The notes beneath the pieces were generated by a model. That model saw only the letters and a list, made by a program, of their open reading frames with translations. It searched no databases and was not told where the DNA came from. A stretch of 63,877 bases of DNA, filler included, from Octopus bimaculoides (Eukaryota), in assembly GCF_001194135.2 (NCBI RefSeq). It is 5 parts of 5 records of this genome, joined end to end, with 100 filler letters (N's around TTAATTAATTAA, not from the genome) between each part and the next. Parts side by side here need not be neighbours in the genome. Positions count along the whole stretch, not along the records: positions 1 to 31,062 come from NC_068981.1; 4 more parts are not named here. One strand, given 5' to 3'. The translations under genes and the position numbers were made by a program. Positions 13,282 to 31,010 of the stretch are shown here, piece after piece. Position 1 is the first letter of the stretch. The number at the start of each line of letters is the position of its first letter.

Positions 13282-13600
13282 TATAACCTTCGAGCAGATA
13301 GTCAGCAGCGCCGCCTGGCTATGGCTTGGCTGCTCTGCATTGACAAGGGGCAACACCCTGAAACTAGTCTGCAGATGCCAAACCAGCAGGGGGACACTGC
13401 TGACCTCCCCTGTTCGAGGGTTATAAAGGACACAGGTTTCGTGTGTCACATAGCTAGCTAGAGGCGATGGCTTCTTGGAGCTAATTCACGGCAGCTTTCG
13501 TCCTAATTTTGGGACTGCCATGTTGGCTTGGCGATAACTATTAATTTCCAGTACCGCTGCCGTAGTCTCCTTTAGAGAGACTTAGAAATATTAATAACTC
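13282..13600 (+). mobile_element. Retrozyme-like, hammerhead-containing, highly structured non-coding element (~320 nt)
   Basis: GC-richer island between (TA)n and (CT)n. Nested helices 13282-13297/13410-13425, 13301-13308/13397-13404, 13326-13330/13377-13381 and 13334-13339/13370-13375 close on an HHR core. A second domain pairs 13488-13495/13556-13563. Confidence 0.6.
13326..13381 (+). ncRNA. Type I hammerhead ribozyme with a U3-A8 core variant
   Basis: tctgca-TTGACAA-gggg[caaca]ccct-GAAA-c[ta]g-TC|tgcaga. Helix I is 6 bp plus a distal 5 bp, helix II is 4 bp, helix III is the palindrome ACTAGT, and the GUC cleavage site follows nt 13369. Confidence 0.8.
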
Positions 13601-14757
13601 TCTCTCTCTCTCTCTCTCTCTCNNNNNNNNNNNNNNNNNNNNNNNNNNNNNNNNNNNNNNNNNNNNNNNNNNNNNNNNNNNNNNNNNNNNNNNNNNNNNN
13701 NNNNNNNNNNNNNNNNNNNNNNNNNNNNNNNNNNNNNNNNNNNNNNNNNNNNNNNNNNNNNNNNNNNNNNNNNNNNNNNNNNNNNNNNNNNNNNNNNNNN
13801 NNNNNNNNNNNNNNNNNNNNNNNNNNNNNNNNNNNNNNNNNNNNNNNNNNNNNNNNNNNNNNNNNNNNNNNNNNNNNNNNNNNNNNNNNNNNNNNNNNNN
13901 NNNNNNNNNNNNNNNNNNNNNNNNNNNNNNNNNNNNNNNNNNNNNNNNNNNNNNNNNNNNNNNNNNNNNNNNNNNNNNNNNNNNNNNNNNNNNNNNNNNN
14001 NNNNNNNNNNNNNNNNNNNNNNNNNNNNNNNNNNNNNNNNNNNNNNNNNNNNNNNNNNNNNNNNNNNNNNNNNNNNNNNNNNNNNNNNNNNNNNNNNNNN
14101 NNNNNNNNNNNNNNNNNNNNNNNNNNNNNNNNNNNNNNNNNNNNNNNNNNNNNNNNNNNNNNNNNNNNNNNNNNNNNNNNNNNNNNNNNNNNNNNNNNNN
14201 NNNNNNNNNNNNNNNNNNNNNNNNNNNNNNNNNNNNNNNNNNNNNNNNNNNNNNNNNNNNNNNNNNNNNNNNNNNNNNNNNNNNNNNNNNNNNNNNNNNN
14301 NNNNNNNNNNNNNNNNNNNNNNNNNNNNNNNNNNNNNNNNNNATATATATAGGTGTGTGTGTGTGTGTATAGATATATAAACACATACACACAAGCACGT
14401 TTTGTACCAGCCATCTGACGTATAACCACGATTCAAGTAATTCAGATTCTGTATAATACAGTTTCATGAAGATGATCGACTTTTCGATTGGGTGCTTGTT
14501 TAATGAGGCTGATCCTGGTCGGTCACAGAAATGTCGGGAAAGTAGGTTTTATATGTCTAGACACTGTTGTGTTCTTGTTTCATAATTGATTATTAAGCTT
14601 CAACACAGACAATATACAGAGCGATTCCACGAATGCTTATGCATACGTAAACACATATATGTGAATATAGATATACATATACATACATTCATACATGTAT
14701 GTATGTATGTATGTATGTATGTATGCACGTATGTATGCATGTATATATATATGCAAG

Positions 14758-17566: not shown

Positions 17567-17935
17567 GGCATTCCGTCGATTACGACGACGAGGATTCCAG
17601 TTGACCCGATCAACGGAACAGCCTGCTCGTGAAATTAACATGCAAGTGGCTGAGCACTCCACAGACACGGTTATTCCTAATGTTGTTCTGGGGGGGGGGG
17701 AGATTCAGCGCAACTCAGGATTGTGAAGAGTCTGGCCCTTGAAATACACGTATAGCAGAAACAAGAGGAAGGGGTGAGAGAAAGTTGTGGTGAAAGTGTA
17801 CAGCAGGACTCGCCACCACCCCTGCAGGAGTCTCGTGGAACTTTAGGGTTTTTTTCTCGCTCAATAAACACTCACAACGCCCGGTCTGCGAATCGAAACC
17901 GCGGTCCTATGACCACTAGGCCATTGCGCCTCCAC
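17567..17935 (-). mobile_element. SINE family C, near full length
   Basis: tRNA-like head (gcgaatcgaaacc on the plus strand is a reversed B box) and the tail shared with 10712-11008. Confidence 0.75.
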
Positions 17936-18974: not shown

Positions 18975-19199
18975 AAACACTTATCTTCTATCGAAGACTG
19001 TCTTCAGTCATTGGAGTGCAGCCATGCTGAGGCACGACTTGTAGGGTTTAGTAGAGTAAATTGATCCCGCTGCTTATTTTTTTTAACGCATCGTGTTTAC
19101 ACTAGCGGGTTTCTTTTGCCGAACCGCTAAAATCGGTTATGAGACACACACACAAATACACACACACGCACACACTCTCCCCACGCGCTCTCTCTCTCT

Positions 19200-20304: not shown

Positions 20305-21285
20305 CTTTGGCGAGTGTCTTCTAATAATACACCAGCGACTAAAGTCTTGTTAGTATATTTAGTGGAGGAAACCGAAAGAAGCCTGTCGTTTATGATGTAT
20401 ATATTTGTGTGGGTCTGTGTGTCCATGTTTGCGTTTGTCCCTCACAACAGCTTGACAACCCATCTTGGTATGCTTACGTACACGTAACTTAGCTGTTCGG
20501 CAAAACGTGTGAAGCAGAAAAAGTACCAGGCGTGGGTGTGTTGAAGTGCAGGCGTGGAATGTAGAGGCGCAGGCGTGGCTGTGTGTGTGTGTACGTGTGT
20601 ATGTGTGTGTCTTTATGTCTGTGTTTCACCCCCAACAATCACCACTTGACAACCGGTGCTGGAGTGTTTATGTTCACGTAAATTAGCGGTTCCCTGCCCC
20701 CAAACCGATAGACTAAATACTTGGCTTGAAAAAATATGTTCTGGGGTCTATTCGTTTGATTAAAACAATTCAACGCGGTGTTCAAGCATGGCCGCAGTCA
20801 AATGACTGAAAGAAATACAAGAATAAAAGTATATATATATATATACATAAATACATACATACATATATATATATATATGGAGTGGCTGTGTGGTAAGTAC
20901 CTTGCTTACCAACCACATGGTTCTGGGTTCATTCCCACTGCGTGGCACCTTGGGCAAGTGTCTTCTACTATAGCCTCGGGCCGACCAAAGCCTTGTGAGT
21001 GGATTTGGTAGACGGAAACTGAAAGAAGCCCTTCGTATATATGTATATATATATATATGTATGTCTGTGTATATGTTTGTATGTCTGTGTTTGTCCCCCC
21101 CAACATCACTTGACAGCCGATGTTGGTGTGTTTACGCCCCTGTAACTTAGCGGTTCGGCAAAAGAGAGCGATAAAATAAGTATTAGGTTTCCAAAGAATA
21201 AGTCCTGGGGTCGCTTTCATCGACTAAAGGCGGTGCTCCAGCATGGCCGCAGTCAAATGACTGAAACAGGTAAAAGAGTAAAAGA

Positions 21286-21287
<2 letters not shown>
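20305..21287 (+). mobile_element. Head-to-tail cluster of three SINE family B copies (youngest 20879-21287)
   Basis: Head ggagtggctgtgtggtaag, B box gggttcattccc, CORE-like gcgtggcaccttgggcaagtgtc, tail ggcggtgctccagcatggccgcagtcaaatgactgaaac. Confidence 0.85.
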
Positions 21288-21319
<32 letters not shown>

Positions 21320-24290: not shown

Positions 24291-24430
24291 TAGCGGTTCG
24301 GCAAAAGAAGCCGATAGAATAAGCACTAGGCTTCCAAAGAATAAGTCCTGGGGTAGATTTGTTCGACTAAAGGCGGTGCTCCAGCATGGCCGCAGTCAAA
24401 TAACTGAAAAAATAAAAGAATAAAAGAATA
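24291..24430 (+). mobile_element. SINE family B 3' half
   Basis: tagcggttcggcaaaag...ggcggtgctccagcatggccgcagtc. Confidence 0.85.
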
Positions 24431-24437
24431 CATGCAT

Positions 24438-24474
<37 letters not shown>

Positions 24475-25194: not shown

Positions 25195-25400
25195 TCTATG
25201 TTTGCCCCAACACCATCACTCGACAACAGATGTTAGTGTGTTTGCGTCCCCATATTCTAGCGGTTCGGTAAACGAAGCCAATTGAATAAGCACTATGCTT
25301 GCAAAGTATAAGTCCTGGGGTCGATTTACTCGACTAAAGGCGGTGCTCCAGCATGGCTGCAGTCAAATGACTGAAACAAGTAAAAGAGTAAAAGAGTATT
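25195..25400 (+). mobile_element. SINE family B 3' half
   Basis: Same tail motifs as 21060-21287. Confidence 0.85.
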
Positions 25401-30770: not shown

Positions 30771-31010
30771 ATCGTAACATATGATTGACAACCAAGCGTG
30801 GCGTCCTATACGGGACAGTGCCACTGACGTCTATAGCCTCAGGAAGACATCTGTTCCAACTGGCTAACGACACACATTCTCGCAAATACTAATCAGACAC
30901 AAAATGTGTGTCGTTAGCCAGCTGGGAGAGATGTCTTCCTTGGGCTATAAATGTCAATAGCACTGTCCCGTATAGGACACCACACTTGGTTGGCAATTAT
31001 ATGTTACGAT
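30771..31010. repeat. Long inverted repeat: 108-bp arms, 24-bp spacer
   Basis: Arms 30771-30878 and 30903-31010; by hand count 13 mismatches and no indels. Confidence 0.95.

Follow-up and report, generated by a model that had tools for sequence, protein, structure and literature searches.

What kind of genetic element is the short, structured repeat that begins at position 13279 of the stretch of Octopus bimaculoides DNA studied here? The stretch, called the window in the following, comprises 63,877 nucleotides (nt, filler included) of the assembly GCF_001194135.2, and its positions 1 to 31,062, where the repeat is located, come from NC_068981.1. From the sequence alone, the repeat had been predicted to be an octopus retrozyme, i.e. 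a small non-coding element whose RNA folds into a long rod capped by a hammerhead ribozyme. According to our analysis, there is about an even chance that the element is a retroelement of the retrozyme type, non-autonomous and dependent on Penelope-like elements, whose hammerhead is a variant one. This reading is based on the combination of a small non-coding unit, about 10^4 copies in the genome, direct head-to-tail joins, a GC content below 50%, a strong RNA structure and a hammerhead motif that follows the type I layout and whose helix III is palindromic. The predicted identity holds in so far as the element is small, structured, multi-copy and found in tandem, with no reverse transcriptase (RT) open reading frame (ORF) in the window, but it is called into question by the variant core, by the lack of a cleavage or circle signal and by the low amount of RNA.

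The hammerhead motif is located on the plus strand at the tip of the rod. Helix I consists of UCUGCA (13334-13339), which pairs with UGCAGA (13370-13375) both in the pair table and in the descriptor used below. It is followed by the core positions 3 to 9 (U3 U4 G5 A6 C7 A8 A9, i.e. UUGACAA, 13340-13346) and by helix II at 13347-13359, a stem of 4 bp formed by GGGG (13347-13350) and CCCU (13356-13359) with a G10.1.U11.1 wobble at its base and CAACA as loop 2. The core residues G12 A13 A14 (13360-13362), none of which shows a variant of at least 1% in the DNA reads, lead into the palindromic helix III (ACUAGU, 13363-13368), in which A15.1 and C15.2 pair with U16.1 and G16.2 around the two residues UA. 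C17 is found at 13369, so that the cleavage site predicted from the motif lies between 13369 and 13370. This arrangement satisfies the type I order, with an open helix I, capped helices II and III, and position 17 directly before the predicted cut. A reading with a bulged U13359 was dropped, since the wobble pair G13347.U13359 removes the insertion.

The original prediction had called this a full hammerhead motif. The type I layout, the palindromic helix III and the GUC were indeed recovered, but the core reads UUGACAA instead of CUGANGA and the pair 10.1-11.1 is a G.U. Overall, ten of the 13 specified positions of the conserved core match, and the deviating ones are U3, A8 and U11.1, where C3, G8 and C11.1 would be expected. 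The pairing of positions 3 and 8 is preserved, as U3-A8 replaces C3-G8, and the same exchange occurs as a natural covariation in the hammerheads of Schistosoma Penelope elements, with approximately 1,300 hits (PMC4209133). For comparison, the canonical metazoan type I hammerhead has a helix I of 6 bp, a helix II of 4 bp and a helix III of 1-2 bp that is closed by a palindromic loop of 2-4 nt (Cervera & de la Pena 2014, PMC4209133).

A canonical hammerhead is ruled out, as there is no CTGANGA box in the region and no match to an Rfam model. We wrote a relaxed type I descriptor that allows the U3-A8 and G.U deviations. With both strands searched, it matches only a single site in the window, namely that of the element. 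Two sets of random sequence, each of 20 Mb, one matched to the window in its dinucleotide make-up and the other to the element, gave no match at all, which corresponds to a 95% upper bound of about 0.01 chance matches per window. A chance origin of the motif is ruled out by this simulation, and the motif is to be considered as hammerhead-derived or hammerhead-like.

The variation between the copies of the family is low within the motif. Between 13334 and 13369, a region covered by about 5,200 DNA reads, variants of at least 1% were found at 13337 in helix I (1.5%), at 13344, the N7 position (1.1%), at 13354 in loop 2 (2.4%) and at 13359, where a T>C change (1.4%) restores the pair G10.1-C11.1. 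This pattern fits a constrained motif, although the argument is weak, as the segment is also without CpG. Outside of these minor variants, the consensus of the family differs from the window copy at four positions, with A at 13282 in about 100%, at 13322 in 71%, at 13332 in 58% and at 13418 in 95% of the copies; the last one turns a U.G pair of the basal helix of the rod into U-A.

A further difference concerns helix III directly. About half of the copies carry an additional CTAGT after 13363 (2,984 of 5,987 DNA reads and approximately 45-52% of the RNA reads). In this longer form, helix III becomes ACUA/UAGU with a GUC triloop and the hammerhead topology is kept. The hammerhead fold of the longer form has a predicted energy of -16.0 kcal/mol, compared to -19.5 kcal/mol for the minimum free energy (MFE) fold. 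Judged by these folds, the longer form could adopt the hammerhead as a monomer, whereas the short form would need a dimer held together through the palindromic helix III.

The motif is embedded in an exceptionally stable structure. An imperfect hairpin of about 145 nt on the plus strand (13283-13424), the rod, is apparent from the MFE fold, the pair table, a z-score of -6.83 and changes from A to G that are restricted to RNA. All rod helices listed in the original prediction are present in the sequence as well as in the MFE fold: the basal helix 13282-13297/13410-13425 with 16 bp (14 Watson-Crick and two G.U pairs), the 8 bp at 13301-13308/13397-13404 and the 5 bp at 13326-13330/13377-13381, to which further short helices are added. 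The 3' half (13426-13601, plus strand) had also been described as structured, and the four hairpins named for it, some of them local and others long-range, form in the fold (gacaca/tgtgtc, acggcagc/gctgccgt, gtcc/ggac and agtctc/gagact). For the 144-nt rod, the folding energy is -73.1 kcal/mol (z -6.83 against dinucleotide shuffles), and for the 319 nt of the predicted element it is -131.2 kcal/mol (z -6.85); in neither case was any shuffled sequence as stable. The rebuilt full unit reaches -142.8 kcal/mol in a circular fold, with 64% of the bases paired and a z-score of about -8.9.

There is also evidence from RNA that the rod exists in the cell. We used three raw RNA-seq runs of about 12 million reads each. 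These libraries may be poly(A)-selected, so that circles would be missed, and they are unstranded, since the reads are evenly split between the mate orientations. On the plus strand of the rod, A>G changes were frequent in RNA (run X42) and rare in DNA (run X24) at 13300 (52% versus 4.8%), 13304 (59% versus 3.4%) and 13307 (54% versus 0.9%). At 13382, 13385 and 13423, 30-35% of the RNA reads showed the change, as opposed to less than 10% of the DNA reads. As RNA-only T>C changes are nearly absent in the element, these changes are to be regarded as adenosine-to-inosine (A-to-I) editing of plus-strand RNA. The editing indicates that the rod forms as double-stranded RNA in vivo, and its pattern suggests that the plus strand, which carries the hammerhead, is mainly transcribed. 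In a few hyper-edited reads, the core residues A8 and A9 (13345/13346) were also changed.

The element is clearly not a single-copy sequence. This possibility was rejected when raw DNA reads of run X24, approximately 1.9 Gb in total, were mapped to the element: starting from about 2,800 at the 5' end, the depth rises to about 7,000 in the middle and drops to about 1,200 at the 3' end, compared to about 0.5 in the unique flank 7600-10327. Converted to copy numbers, this amounts to approximately 14,000 copies of the central part, 5,600 5' ends and 2,400 3' ends, and the expectation of a multi-copy family was therefore borne out with about 10^4 copies in the genome. The sequence is present even in runs of only a few million letters, although it occurs just once within the window. 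Since two thirds of the DNA reads are at least 95% identical to the window copy, the family is young. RNA runs of three other species yielded no match to the element at 80% or above; a fourth run was with the consensus only.

The predicted tandem arrangement was found as well. A head-to-tail joint, in which 13601 is followed by 38 nt and then directly by 13279, is supported by 219 DNA reads and 33 RNA reads and also occurs in 11 contigs of a whole-genome run from 2015 (agreement 0.99). We estimate that there are about 900 such joints in the genome, with between several hundred and about 1,000 units arranged in this way. In addition, a run labelled as stemming from another organism (X38) contains one self-closing unitig of 396 nt, which equals a unit of 366 nt plus an overlap of 30 nt. 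This unitig has a depth of 75, corresponds to the consensus of the longer form with CTAGT and is the sole trace of the family in that run. Its presence would be explained by a low-level carry-over of nucleic acid (DNA or RNA) from the host, or by a dominant template in that sample that is tandem or circular.

Some caution is required for joints seen in run X24. Reads of this run on 13286-13598 carry a perfect palindrome of 28-30 nt, (A)GGTTCGTCCATCGATCGATGGACGAACC(T), attached at many positions, and this palindrome is most likely the bridge linker of a proximity-ligation library and not part of the element. Because of this linker, chimeric joints in X24 need independent support, which exists for the tandem joint, since it is independently present in other runs.

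The boundaries of the unit had to be revised. Instead of a start at 13282 and a length of about 320 nt, the family begins at 13279 and ends 38 nt beyond 13601, which results in a full unit of 361-366 nt; this follows from reads of other copies, which match 13279-13601 and then run on into the 38 nt. The GC content of the rebuilt full unit is 0.468. The terminal 38 nt, ATTTCTGAAAACCAGTGGATAGATTCCACTGAAATTAG, contain a hairpin of 7 bp (CAGTGGA/TCCACTG). The copy in the window (13279-13601, plus strand) is complete at its 5' end but is without these 38 nt. Their place is taken by a (CT)n stretch (13598-13622), which is directly followed by an assembly gap of 720 N (13623-14342). The window copy has thus lost or hides its last 38 nt, and the earlier suggestion that the gap may conceal more of the element is reasonable.

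At its 5' end, the element abuts a (TA)n microsatellite (13186-13285, identified by Tandem Repeats Finder). The description of the locus as a GC-richer, non-coding island between microsatellites is therefore correct: the GC content is 0.47-0.54 in the element and 0.17-0.35 in the flanks, (TA)n and (CT)n lie on the two sides, and the unit has neither an ORF nor a Pfam domain. The (TA)n array is likely the insertion target of the element. In other copies, which are truncated, (TA)n or (AT)n adjoins the element at 13326, 13331 and 13545, although this preference relies on a handful of junctions among those listed, and upstream flanks are not among the loose ends listed for the DNA reads. At the level of the family, sub-populations of copies stop at 13545 and continue with (AT)n. 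A second 3' subfamily diverges at 13596/13601, where ...ATTAATA followed by TTTCTATTTTCGAAAACCAGTGGATGTGCT is found in place of ...AACTCT followed by ATTTCTGAAAACCAGTGGATAGATTCC.

How could such an element spread? Animal non-LTR retrozymes, i.e. those without long terminal repeats (LTRs), are tandem-prone units of about 300 nt that have been described in coral, mussel and axolotl (Cervera & de la Pena 2020, PMC7229834), and it was argued that they are non-autonomous Penelope derivatives, with monomer shares ranging from 0 to 1 (10.64898/2026.07.22.740005). Penelope-like elements, including Naiads, occur in Octopus species, and Naiads prefer (TA)n (Craig et al. 2021, PMC8557442). Head-to-tail insertions are a general product of Penelope-like elements, and non-autonomous derivatives (Chlamys) give rise to multicopy ones (PMC8557442). 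In the reading that we consider most likely, the octopus element would be derived from Penelope-like elements or be carried along by them as a passenger. It would be transcribed from the plus strand, and a Penelope-type reverse transcriptase/endonuclease would copy this RNA in trans. The new copies, in many cases head-to-tail multimers, would be placed with preference at (TA)n microsatellites. Self-cleavage would be expected between 13369 and 13370, probably in a dimer for the short form and in a monomer for the form with CTAGT, and the RNA may pass through a circular stage.

There are considerable similarities to the metazoan non-LTR retrozymes. The element shares with them a non-coding unit of about 300-390 nt with a GC content below 50%, thousands of copies, the head-to-tail arrangement, the type I layout, the short palindromic helix III and the highly structured RNA. 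With regard to size and composition, the unit has all features of a non-LTR retrozyme (150-450 bp, multi-copy, GC below 50%, no LTR, primer-binding site or polypurine tract). However, the core of retrozymes is canonical, whereas that of the octopus element is characterized by U3-A8 and the G.U pair 10.1-11.1. Furthermore, its copies are mostly monomers or fragments, there is little RNA, and neither circular nor cleaved forms were detected in the three libraries. A comparable case is presented by Sm-alpha of Schistosoma and satellite 2 of newts, which are also repeated, transcribed units of about 330 nt with a type I hammerhead and a weak, dimer-dependent helix III. Both differ from the octopus element in having a canonical CUGAUGA core and demonstrated cleavage.

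The hammerheads of Penelope elements, for instance Cercyon of Schistosoma (PMC4209133), resemble the octopus motif in U3-A8, in the palindromic 15.2-16.2 and loop 3, in the massive number of dispersed copies and in the low activity expected for monomers. However, in the minimal hammerheads of Penelope elements, helix II is long (6-8 bp) and preceded on its 5' side by an unpaired base, helix I is short (4-5 bp) and helix III is usually missing. In contrast, the octopus motif with its helices of 6, 4 and 2 bp is laid out like a canonical hammerhead of the retrozyme type, and the element has no Penelope ORF attached to it. With Penelope-like derivatives and Naiads (PMC8557442) it shares the association with (TA)n, the head-to-tail multicopy insertion, the tens of thousands of copies and the presence in Octopus; Naiads, however, are without canonical hammerheads (PMC8557442). 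We found no described retrozyme or hammerhead family from octopus or any other cephalopod in the open literature. The only related item concerned the giant squid, for whose genome 235 hits of Rfam Hammerhead_1 were counted (PMC6962438).

A number of observations weigh against the interpretation as a retrozyme. Three conserved core positions (U3, A8 and U11.1) deviate, and none of the Rfam ribozyme models, of which Hammerhead_1, HH9 and HH10 had been proposed as a check, supports the motif: Hammerhead_1, Hammerhead_3, HH9, HH10 and Hammerhead_II had no match at the gathering score over the whole piece, and within 13200-13622 no ribozyme was found even at E <= 10, where only microsatellite-driven microRNA noise appeared. 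We looked for a subfamily with C3 or G8 in the DNA reads at a threshold of 1% and found none (13345 A>G in 0 of 5,206 reads, 13340 T>C below 1%). The family DNA reads also provide no covariation support for the rod, since one-sided changes keep about as many pairs as they break; linked two-sided changes cannot be read from such per-position variant tables. In addition, the DNA depth, which peaks in the middle of the element and drops toward both ends, implies that most copies are partial monomers rather than arrays.

The RNA data point in the same direction. The known retrozymes are described as highly expressed, with abundant cleaved and circular RNA as their hallmark, and RNA ends at 13369 as well as back-splice-like junction reads at 13369/13370 had been named as signs to look for in the octopus element. 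However, in the three RNA-seq runs the depth is continuous across 13369/13370 without any pile-up of ends. Six RNA molecules beginning at 13367 that had been flagged on a shorter stretch were not reproduced over the full element. Head-to-tail joints do occur in RNA, but their ratio to the depth at the 3' end, about 0.24, is similar to that in DNA (about 0.18). Tandem copies in the genome therefore account for the joints in RNA, and the joint share in the three runs gives no sign of circles. Element RNA is also scarce, with about 350-470 reads per run or about 31 per million. The RNA depth per DNA depth is only about 0.02, compared to about 0.28 for a neighbouring short interspersed element (SINE) at 10452-10575. 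Nevertheless, since the libraries may be poly(A)-selected, neither the low RNA level nor the absence of ends and circles refutes the retrozyme reading.

Several of these observations are also expected if the element is an ordinary non-autonomous repeat, SINE-like or unclassified, that carries the inactive relic of a hammerhead. Its RNA would then be passively co-transcribed and edited, and the joints would result from template switching or unequal exchange. We consider this explanation possible but rather unlikely. The non-canonical core, which is fixed throughout the family, agrees with it, as do the missing Rfam match, the missing cleavage or circle signal, the low RNA abundance and the mostly monomeric or truncated state of the copies. 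The 7-bp hairpin at the 3' terminus, within the 38-nt segment, can also be put forward in its favor. This hairpin resembles the stem-loops that are recognised by stringent long interspersed elements (LINEs). However, the motif is far too complete to have arisen by chance, and U3-A8 preserves the pair and is known from families of the active type.

The search for the head of a SINE was also without result. A tRNA-derived SINE was rejected, because ARAGORN found nothing and no tRNA, 5S or 7SL match was obtained with Rfam at E <= 10; the only likeness to a B-box in the element is a GTTCGA core. Hence, there is no tRNA, 5S or 7SL head that would support a SINE. The octopus tRNA-derived SINEs OK, OR1 and OR2 (Ohshima & Okada 1994), going by the account of them cited in PMC10886601, are likewise short, abundant and non-coding, but differ from the element, in which no tRNA-like head was detected. 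Moreover, the spacer-free head-to-tail joins and the (TA)n ends fit a Penelope-type insertion better than a LINE-type insertion.

The Penelope-type features raise the question whether the repeat is an independent element at all, or whether it belongs to an autonomous Penelope-like element, either as its terminal repeat (pLTR) or as a solo pLTR. Hammerheads of Penelope-like elements are located in pLTRs and occur genome-wide mostly as single motifs of truncated elements, the U3-A8 variant was first seen in Penelope-like elements (PMC4209133), and retrozyme families are sister to pLTRs (10.64898/2026.07.22.740005). Yet in the readable 31 kb around the copy there is no RT or GIY-YIG ORF and no Pfam domain in the window ORFs, so that the window copy lacks any recognizable RT or endonuclease partner. 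Neighbouring units are joined directly, with only the 38 nt between them, and among the loose ends listed there is no consensus that runs into a longer conserved sequence. We therefore regard a pLTR as improbable.

The weakest alternative is a derivative of a DNA transposon with an irrelevant likeness to a hammerhead, either a miniature inverted-repeat transposable element (MITE) with 16-bp terminal inverted repeats and TA or a non-autonomous Helitron, and it is barely credible: an inverted repeat of 15-16 bp (TATAACCTTCGAGCAG / CTGTTCGAAGGTTATA) does lie beside a TA-rich flank, the unit has a hairpin close to its 3' end and head-to-tail arrays are also within the reach of rolling-circle elements, but the MITE was rejected, as family reads pass through 13425 into the 3' half and the inverted repeat is thus internal and not terminal, the Helitron was rejected, as the Helitron termini 5'-TC...CTRR-3' are not matched by ATAAATAAC... 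and ...GAAATTAG, the two ends of the unit, and the motif statistics would be left unexplained.

The interpretation as a retrozyme-type, Penelope-dependent element can be extended to a more ambitious one. The family might be a cephalopod retrozyme family with a working U3-A8/G10.1.U11.1 hammerhead, of which the short form cleaves as a dimer and the form with CTAGT as a monomer. The rod would then be a major substrate of ADAR, and A-to-I editing, including that of A8 and A9, would tune or disable both the ribozyme and the spread of the element. This full scenario is a long shot.

Several other repeats are present in the window. A very abundant one is found at 10431-10629, with an inverted copy at 4549-4746. 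Its DNA depth is about 18,700 reads at 10541, which corresponds to approximately 18,000-37,000 copies, and in RNA it reaches a bin depth of about 2,600; per DNA copy, its RNA exceeds that of the hammerhead-bearing element about tenfold. A third SINE-like repeat occurs in six copies with 68-89% identity (20596-20861, 21062-21318, 24291-24460, 25195-25398 and, on the minus strand, 3682-3931 and 19003-19133), several of which adjoin microsatellites and assembly gaps. Furthermore, there is a repeat pair at 10901-10997 and 17576-17673 (minus strand) with 81% identity; the DNA depth at 10824-11071 is about 500-1,400. Finally, a segment of 240 bp near the end of the piece (30771-31010) matches its own reverse complement with 82% identity and thus represents a long palindrome or hairpin.

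The meaning of the family for the biology of the octopus depends on whether the motif cleaves. If it does not, the element would simply join the many abundant repeats with a structured RNA, and its main use would be in the annotation of repeats and as a substrate of editing. If it does, cephalopods would have their first described family of the retrozyme type. The family would also provide, in about 10^4 copies, a natural hammerhead that works with a U3-A8 core in a canonical retrozyme layout and is missed by the standard descriptors and by Rfam. It would add an invertebrate case to the recent proposal in which the retrozymes of animals travel as passengers of Penelope-like elements, and it would tie a mobile RNA with a ribozyme to the RNA editing of its host, which is unusually active.

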